This document shows positions 50,379 through 50,789 of a stretch of DNA of 64,000 nt, piece after piece (positions within the stretch are counted from its first letter, which is position 1; each line of letters begins with the position of its first letter). The notes under the pieces were generated by a model. It had not been told where the DNA came from. It saw nothing but the letters and a program-made list of their open reading frames with translations, and did not search any database. A program made the position numbers and the translations under genes. The DNA is from Macrostomum lignano (lineage: Eukaryota), in assembly GCA_002269645.1 (NCBI GenBank), contig NIVC01001119.1:291201-355200 (forward strand). Reading direction: 5' to 3'.

Positions 50379-50789
50379 ATGGCTCGCACCAAGCAAACAG
50401 CTAGGAAGTCCATGGGCGCCAAAGCGCCTCGTAAACGTCTGGCCACCAAGGCCGCTCGGAAAACCCCATTGGTAACTGGCGGAGTGAAGAAGCCGCACCG
50501 CTACCGCCCCGGCACTGTCGCCCTGCGTGAGATCCGTCGCTACCAGAAGAGCACGGAGCTGCTCATCCGCAAACTGCCATTCCAGCGGCTGGTTCGCGAG
50601 ATCGCCCAGGACTTCAAGACCGACCTGCGCTTTCAATCGGCTGCCGTCGGCGCCCTGCAGGAGGCCAGCGAGGCCTACCTGGTTGGCCTGTTTGAGGACA
50701 CGAACCTGTGCGCAATTCACGCCAAGCGGGTCACCATCATGCCTAAAGACATGCAGTTGGCTAGGCGCATCAGAGGCGAAAGGGCTTAG
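50379..50789 (+). CDS. Divergent H3.3-derived histone variant (T11M, G13A, Q19R, S28T, A29P, P30L, S31V, I124M)
   Basis: ATG at 50379, intact 411-nt [43 protein letters not shown]...AAVG...[15 protein letters not shown]. The histone fold is otherwise identical to the neighbouring H3.3. Confidence 0.95.

Follow-up and report, generated by a model that had tools for sequence, protein, structure and literature searches.

A candidate lineage-specific histone H3 with a rewritten K27 flank, encoded beside H3.3 in the flatworm Macrostomum lignano

Lineage-specific histones derived from H3.3 include the further variants H3.5 and H3.Y of primates. In the mouse, the H3mm6-18 genes are young, taxon-restricted and mostly intronless H3.3-like genes with few substitutions, often tissue-restricted in expression, and were first missed by annotation (PMC4574566). 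The regenerative acoel Hofstenia miamia has several H3.3 paralogs: two serve as markers of a subset of its neoblasts, and regeneration depends on one (PMC10163032). Variants of H3 that alter the surroundings of K27 yet keep the lysine are rare, and the one well-studied case, H3.10 of Arabidopsis, wipes Polycomb memory between generations. S28T and neighboring substitutions in H3.10 prevent trimethylation of K27 by PRC2, and the histone contributes to the resetting of paternal H3K27me3 (PMC7838089; PMC12204037).

Here we describe an H3 gene of the flatworm Macrostomum lignano in which K27 is kept and the four residues that follow it are replaced. The protein resembles Arabidopsis thaliana H3.10 (HTR10/MGH3, sperm-specific) in being H3.3-type, in keeping K27, and in carrying S28T followed by changed residues. 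The two are of independent origin (plant versus flatworm) and use different replacement residues, and the flatworm variant, unlike H3.10, has a fold held identical to that of H3.3 by gene conversion. H3.10 also has established expression and biochemistry, whereas the flatworm variant is described here from its sequence. The comparison with mammalian H3.3-derived variants runs along other lines: these are young and mostly carry substitutions scattered over tail and fold, whereas the flatworm variant is old, has a fold in concerted evolution, and shows changes confined to the tail with a contiguous block at residues 28–31. The paralogs of Hofstenia, which belongs to a phylum unrelated to that of the flatworm, differ in a fold motif (AAIL, IALE) rather than in the K27 flank, and their expression has been demonstrated. 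Relative to canonical animal H3.3 (the H3F3A/B type, represented here by the adjacent gene), the variant shares the AAVG motif, the length, the lack of a stem-loop and a predicted polyadenylation-type 3′ end; it lacks S31 and T11, its S28-A29-P30 context is replaced, and its promoter and UTRs are unrelated. We place the variant in an established class, that of lineage-specific, H3.3-like tail variants.

The variant gene and its locus copies

The window that we analyzed, a stretch of 64,000 nt, corresponds to the locus copy L011 on contig NIVC01001119.1 of assembly GCA_002269645.1 (Mlig_3_7), which is identical to it from position 31495 onward. The gene upstream of the variant is CNOT9/Rcd1, whose top match is an M. 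lignano protein, and the locus reads septin, CNOT9, variant H3, H3.3, with the two H3 genes arranged tail-to-tail and 1.4 kb apart. The coding features are as follows.

50379..50789 (+): coding sequence of the H3 tail variant, complete and intronless, 136 aa and TAG (intact ORF, Pfam match, BLASTP)
50463..50474 (+): codons for residues 28–31, ACC CCA TTG GTA (T-P-L-V) against TCC GCC CCC AGC (S-A-P-S) in H3.3; 9 of 12 nt differ
50751..50753 (+): M124 codon, ATG in the window and in the L013/L014 copies, ATC (I) in L012
52236..52646 (−): neighboring convergent H3.3 gene, the gene-conversion donor, encoding the pan-flatworm H3.3 protein (AAVG); ORF, BLASTP, annotated in all four M. lignano copies

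A BLASTP alignment of the variant with the H3.3-type ORF at 52236..52646 (−) gives 128/136 identities and 0 gaps. The only eight differences, in mature numbering, are T11M, G13A, Q19R, S28T, A29P, P30L, S31V and I124M. Lysines K4, K9, K14, K18, K23, K27, K36 and K37 are all retained, as are all tail arginines, and residues 87–90 read AAVG, the same as in the adjacent flatworm H3.3, with A87 and G90 both present. The Pfam Histone family (PF00125) matches residues 7–132 with E=2.1e-46. The top solved-structure matches of the variant are H3.3 chains, and the nucleosome structures of H3mm7 and H3mm15 are also among the matches. With valine at residue 31, the H3.3 hallmark S31 (or T31) is absent, and K27 stands in the context A-A-R-K-T-P-L-V, where H3.3 has S-A-P-S after the lysine. 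The preliminary description had called this an intact H3 carrying these eight changes, with every tail lysine kept, the residues after K27 rewritten, and A87 and G90 in place; the ORF check and the alignment with the neighboring H3.3 confirm each of these points for the window. Its I124M holds for the window and the L013/L014 copies and fails for L012, which carries I124, so this change is not a fixed feature of the variant.

Three more copies of the locus are present in Mlig_3_7 (L012, L013 and L014), all of them with an intact variant ORF and an identical tail. L013 (NIVC01003145.1) and L014 (NIVC01002680.1) show 0 differences over the roughly 4 kb H3 region and differ further upstream; probably one haplotype was assembled twice, or the region was duplicated very recently. 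Counting these two once over the H3 region, there are three distinct locus versions, whose neighboring non-coding DNA differs by 2–7%. An assembly or sequencing artifact, or a chimera built from mis-assembled H3 genes, might be suspected in a genome as highly redundant as this one, given that Mlig_3_7 holds 180 Mb in duplicated blocks (PMC5730564) and that no difference separates L013 from L014 in the H3 region. The variant is not an assembly artifact, however, because three further locus copies encode the same tail; it occupies the same place and orientation between CNOT9 and H3.3 on contigs that differ to the extent just given, and the 14 differing sites in the L012 copy fit a pattern of gene conversion. 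An artifactual origin is thereby effectively refuted.

A named H3 protein of Fasciola hepatica (P0073) contains the exact H3.3 protein sequence as well. The assemblies that hold this exact protein are, from their accessions, presumably those of Schistosoma and Echinococcus. At ten parasitic-flatworm loci holding the identical H3.3 protein, no second H3 was found within ±10 kb, so that synteny of the H3 pair does not extend to these loci.

Mosaic divergence between the variant and H3.3

Divergence from H3.3 is distributed very unevenly along the coding sequence, which falls into three segments.

50379..50474 (+): tail segment, CDS nt 1–96, unconverted, carrying T11M, G13A and Q19R; 27–28 fixed differences from H3.3
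50475..50779 (+): histone-fold segment, CDS nt 97–401, homogenized with H3.3 by gene conversion (low dS; L012 haplotype match)
50780..50789 (+): last three codons and stop, CDS nt 402–411, the other end left out of conversion, likewise of ancient divergence, with 5 fixed differences that are synonymous or in the stop codon

Across the tail (nt 1–96), pS relative to H3.3 is 0.60–0.64 (dS about 1.2–1.4) with a dN of 0.17, which is near synonymous saturation, and the variant tail codons are invariant among the three distinct locus copies. Across the fold (nt 97–401), dS is 0.21 in the window, 0.18 in L013 and 0.03 in L012. Similarity in the 5′ flanks of the two genes is limited to about 25 nt of 5′UTR, beyond which the flanks are unrelated.

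The L012 copy identifies the process at work in the fold. There, wherever a fold site is informative, the variant has the same base as the H3.3 gene next to it, even where the H3.3 copies differ from one another, and it carries two private synonymous changes. The L012 variant fold is a recent gene-conversion tract spanning at least nt 150–394, and the donor is the inverted H3.3 gene 1.4 kb away. The variant fold is thus almost identical to that of H3.3 because the adjacent gene overwrites it by conversion, and with repeated overwriting the protein keeps the H3.3 fold, including the A87/G90 chaperone-recognition residues. Conversion into the tail is not seen in any locus copy, which is compatible with either selection or lack of homology as the barrier.

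The window and L013 variants retain 10 older fixed fold differences from every H3.3 copy, nine of them synonymous and the tenth M124. Judged by these differences, the variant is an old paralog of H3.3, and its likeness in the fold reflects concerted evolution and not recent duplication. The term H3.3-derived, used for the gene at first, therefore needs dividing: the protein is indeed H3.3-type, whereas a simple recent derivative does not agree with a pS of about 0.6 in the tail and at the 3′ end, the identity of the fold having come about through conversion. As for the block at 28–31, inspection by eye for a frameshift or templated origin yielded nothing convincing. The rewrite could be one complex mutation, several substitutions, or a local adaptive change.

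Flanking regions, annotation and database searches

Outside the coding sequence, three features bear on the form of the gene.

50230..50255 (+): two CCAAT boxes at −149 and −128 from the ATG, an inverted ATTGG at 50230 and a direct CCAAT at 50251; identical in four copies
50278..50301 (+): A/T-rich TATA-like elements, a putative core promoter predicted from the sequence, at −101 and −83 from the ATG (TAAAGA at 50278, TTTAAG at 50296)
51017..51022 (+): putative poly(A) signal AATAAA, 228 nt after the stop, the sole AATAAA in the 900 nt past the stop; conserved in four copies

A search for a histone 3′ stem-loop (RF00032-type) with Rfam found none at the gathering threshold or at E<=10. With its CCAAT boxes, a single conserved AATAAA and no stem-loop, the gene is replacement-type in form; these predicted elements are those of a polyadenylated replacement-type histone gene with its own promoter.

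Several smaller observations concern the ends of the two H3 genes. At 50790-50800 and, on the minus strand, at 52225-52235, the motif GGCTCA lies right after the stop codon in both (TAG-GGCTCAAGA in the variant, TAA-AAAGGCTCAGTT in H3.3). Its likeness to the 5′ half of the canonical stem-loop of histone genes (AAAGGCTC...) could be fortuitous, or it could be a remnant from an ancestor that was replication-dependent. About 65 nt upstream of the H3.3 ATG, at 52700-52720 (−), there is a strong polypyrimidine-AG acceptor (ttgtttgtttttaag), which suggests a 5′UTR intron or spliced-leader trans-splicing in that gene. The variant shows nothing comparable.

Comparison of the three distinct copies shows next to no variation in the tail codons of the variant and the 1.1 kb ahead of the gene, against 3–7% variable sites per 100 nt in the shared 3′ intergenic region. 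We rejected the invariance of the promoter as proof of regulatory constraint, since the invariant block at 49300-50500 includes a dead retroelement fragment; the argument is weakened too by the region upstream of H3.3, which is equally invariant for 1.6 kb. Over the locus as a whole the three-copy divergence is patchy, with about 0 at 49300-50500 and 52600-54200 (upstream of both H3 genes) and 3–7% per 100 nt at 50800-52200. This pattern points to exchange between homeologs or conversion among the locus copies, or else to constraint on certain regions.

The decayed retroelement fragment lies at 49300-49590 (+), 0.8–1.1 kb upstream of the variant, and comprises a Gag-type CCHC zinc knuckle (CSICNKPRHLAQAC) followed by an aspartic-protease motif, LVDSGAS (EALVDSGASCNVID), after which it breaks off. 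A Pfam search of the 162-aa ORF at 48900-49388 in this region returned no match. Between the fragment and the variant promoter, at 49594-49895, an imperfect inverted repeat (arms of 36–51 nt, 76–89% complementary, spaced 150–200 nt) flanks a C10/A7 homopolymer run and is invariant among copies. Long minisatellite or tandem-repeat arrays occur at 9341-10069, 12900-13540, 19245-19880, 33290-34780, 40040-41420, 43900-44450 and 45750-46300, mostly in introns of the PCBP-like, septin and CNOT9 genes, where they yield long spurious ORFs. These arrays are consistent with the 15% of simple and tandem repeats reported for the M. lignano genome (PMC5730564).

The GenBank annotation of Mlig_3_7 was built from RNA evidence only, using StringTie/TACO on published RNA-seq together with a de novo transcriptome, and novel transcripts below 0.5 RPKM were discarded (PMC5730564). 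It contains no model for the variant in any of the four locus copies and models H3.3 in all four. The missing annotation fits either a silent gene or expression in poorly sampled embryos or a small cell population.

Exact look-up in about 15 billion proteins found neither the M124 form of the variant nor the I124 form of L012, and look-up of a 149-aa form starting at an upstream GTG was also empty. A full-length protein search was uninformative: H3 is so conserved that it returned at least 8000 candidates, and clustering at 90% identity hides a 94%-identical variant in the H3.3 cluster. When only the tail was searched, no protein or fragment with K-T-P-L-V was found, and the nearest matches were unrelated H3s that read ARKTPATGG and are one residue shorter. 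Two metagenome-derived H3 fragments, P0126 and P0128, have T28-P29 and the one-residue deletion; the K27-T-P context therefore exists in some other eukaryotes. Degenerate-DNA scans of JGI metagenome contigs for two variant peptides produced 0 hits, and a literature search found no published account of the variant or of flatworm H3 tail variants.

Selection, the K27 flank and competing readings

We restricted the estimates of selection to sites not erased by conversion, because conversion could make a dead gene look alive, and assessed conservation from paralog and homeolog comparisons within M. lignano. The fold of the window copy has 14 synonymous differences and 1 non-synonymous difference, an omega of 0.02; with half of the synonymous changes put on the variant branch, the constraint on the fold has p=3e-4. 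Outside residues 28–31, the tail has a pN/pS of 0.13; Fisher's test gives p=1e-6, which becomes p=0.013 when the variant branch is likewise given half of the synonymous changes. At codons 28–31 the ratio is about 1. All of these ratios would be biased downward if conversion from a third functional H3 gene had imported synonymous differences. Given 7 changes in 32 residues, a run of four adjacent changed residues has P=0.025. We also simulated neutral change by placing 14, 20 or 28 random substitutions on the tail of H3.3. An outcome with no stop codon, no more than 7 residue changes and all six lysines preserved had a probability of 0.017, 1.5e-4 and <5e-5, respectively. On balance, these estimates point to a variant that was under constraint as a protein over most of its past, apart from one localized rewrite at 28–31. 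Such purifying selection makes the variant probably a working gene.

On the contrary reading, the gene is a duplicate with little or no expression, a pseudogene in effect; conversion repairs its fold, and its tail changes are neutral decay out of conversion's reach. This reading would explain why an RNA-based annotation lacks a transcript model in four copies and why the protein is absent from every protein source searched; the gene conversion on which it relies is directly demonstrated, residues 28–31 evolve as it would predict, and the tail GC3 of 0.58 is below the 0.70–0.73 of H3.3. The unconverted sites speak otherwise: in the window and L013 the fixed fold differences are 9 synonymous to 1 non-synonymous (14 to 1 over the whole window copy), and the tail outside 28–31 is held at the pN/pS given above with six lysines and all arginines kept. 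At a tail pS of 0.6, neutrality would have changed about half of the residues and introduced a stop codon in about half of the simulations, whereas all copies have an intact ORF, omega is 0.02 for the fold and 0.13 for the tail apart from 28–31, and the CCAAT boxes and poly(A) signal are likewise intact in every copy. We consider a silent duplicate unlikely.

What a working variant would do depends on how the K27 flank is read. Prior work traces the grip of EZH2 on the H3 tail to R26/K27 and to a hydrophobic hotspot around A29/P30 (PMC7725500). On peptide arrays, PRC2 prefers A/V/C/T/S at position 29, a set that does not include proline, and phosphorylation of S28 displaces PRC2 (PMC9255955). 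In the variant, P29 lies outside the preferred residues, and this, together with the plant H3.10 precedent, makes Polycomb resistance plausible. A proline at +1 is disfavored by basophilic Aurora/MSK-type kinases and favored by proline-directed kinases. On the other side, the intact A25-R26-K27, the conservative T28 and the hydrophobic L30/V31 might still fit the EZH2 pocket and permit normal K27 methylation.

Putting these points together, the variant would be expected to enter chromatin through the H3.3 (HIRA/DAXX-type) pathway, and its nucleosomes would present a K27 flanked as R-K-T-P-L-V. Two phospho-acceptors, T11 and S31, are missing from its tail, which makes S31 phosphorylation impossible, and T28-P29 would be a poor Aurora/MSK-type site and a potential proline-directed one, rewiring the phospho-switch. 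The A29/P30 surface gripped by EZH2 is altered, with P30 lost and a proline placed at 29. The likeliest outcome is that the writing and reading of K27 methylation and the S28/S31 phospho-switches would differ on the variant, reduced methylation by PRC2 being the leading specific possibility. Expression would probably be limited to a cell type or stage that is poorly sampled by whole-worm poly(A) RNA-seq.

It is also conceivable, if doubtful, that the variant is a functional H3.3 isoform with normal K27 methylation whose tail changes serve something else. Candidate roles would be the loss of T11/S31 phosphorylation, a switch of kinase class at residue 28, altered readers or demethylases of K36/K27, or divergent regulation of expression with the residue changes merely tolerated. 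The A24-A25-R26-K27 core read by the EZH2 SET domain is unchanged and S28T is conservative, T11, S31 and the S28 context are phospho-sites that have been lost or re-contexted, and the promoter of the variant is separate from the H3.3 promoter and unrelated to it, all of which suit such an isoform. It sits less well with a P29 outside the PRC2 peptide-array preference, with changes to A29/P30, which form one of two hydrophobic contacts with EZH2, and with H3.10, the sole characterized precedent with T28 and a changed flank, being refractory to PRC2.

Taking all of this evidence together, our preferred reading, to which we give a rough probability of 0.55, is a functional, unannotated, lineage-specific replacement-type H3 of M. 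lignano: an old H3.3 paralog with a converted fold, in which K27 handling or phospho-switches are altered. That the variant works like H3.10 is a hypothesis by analogy. In its full form, an independently evolved animal counterpart of the H3.10 solution would be an H3.3-pathway histone with a K27 that PRC2 cannot methylate, would serve to remove or prevent Polycomb memory in the germline, the early embryo or the neoblasts of a regenerating flatworm, and would have its tail shielded from conversion by selection; we think this distinctly improbable. The preliminary description had presented H3.10 as a histone with T28 and an altered flank that resists K27 methylation, which the published account bears out (PMC7838089). 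Its proposal of a candidate Polycomb-resistant H3 at this locus holds in part: the locus does encode an intact H3.3-type protein with AAVG, no stem-loop, a poly(A) signal and a rewritten K27 flank. The gene is not a simple recent derivative of H3.3, and as to the possible germline or stem-cell expression, the one observation that bears on expression, an RNA-based annotation without the variant, points the other way.

The locus is an example of how an intact histone variant can be overlooked by evidence-based annotation. Regardless of function, it also offers a clean natural pair of H3 genes whose folds are kept alike by conversion and whose tails are not. M. lignano is a hermaphroditic model that regenerates and is open to transgenesis, and if the variant is expressed, it would provide a tractable animal system for studying how residues 28–31 tune PRC2, the S28/S31 phospho-switches and the readers of K27.
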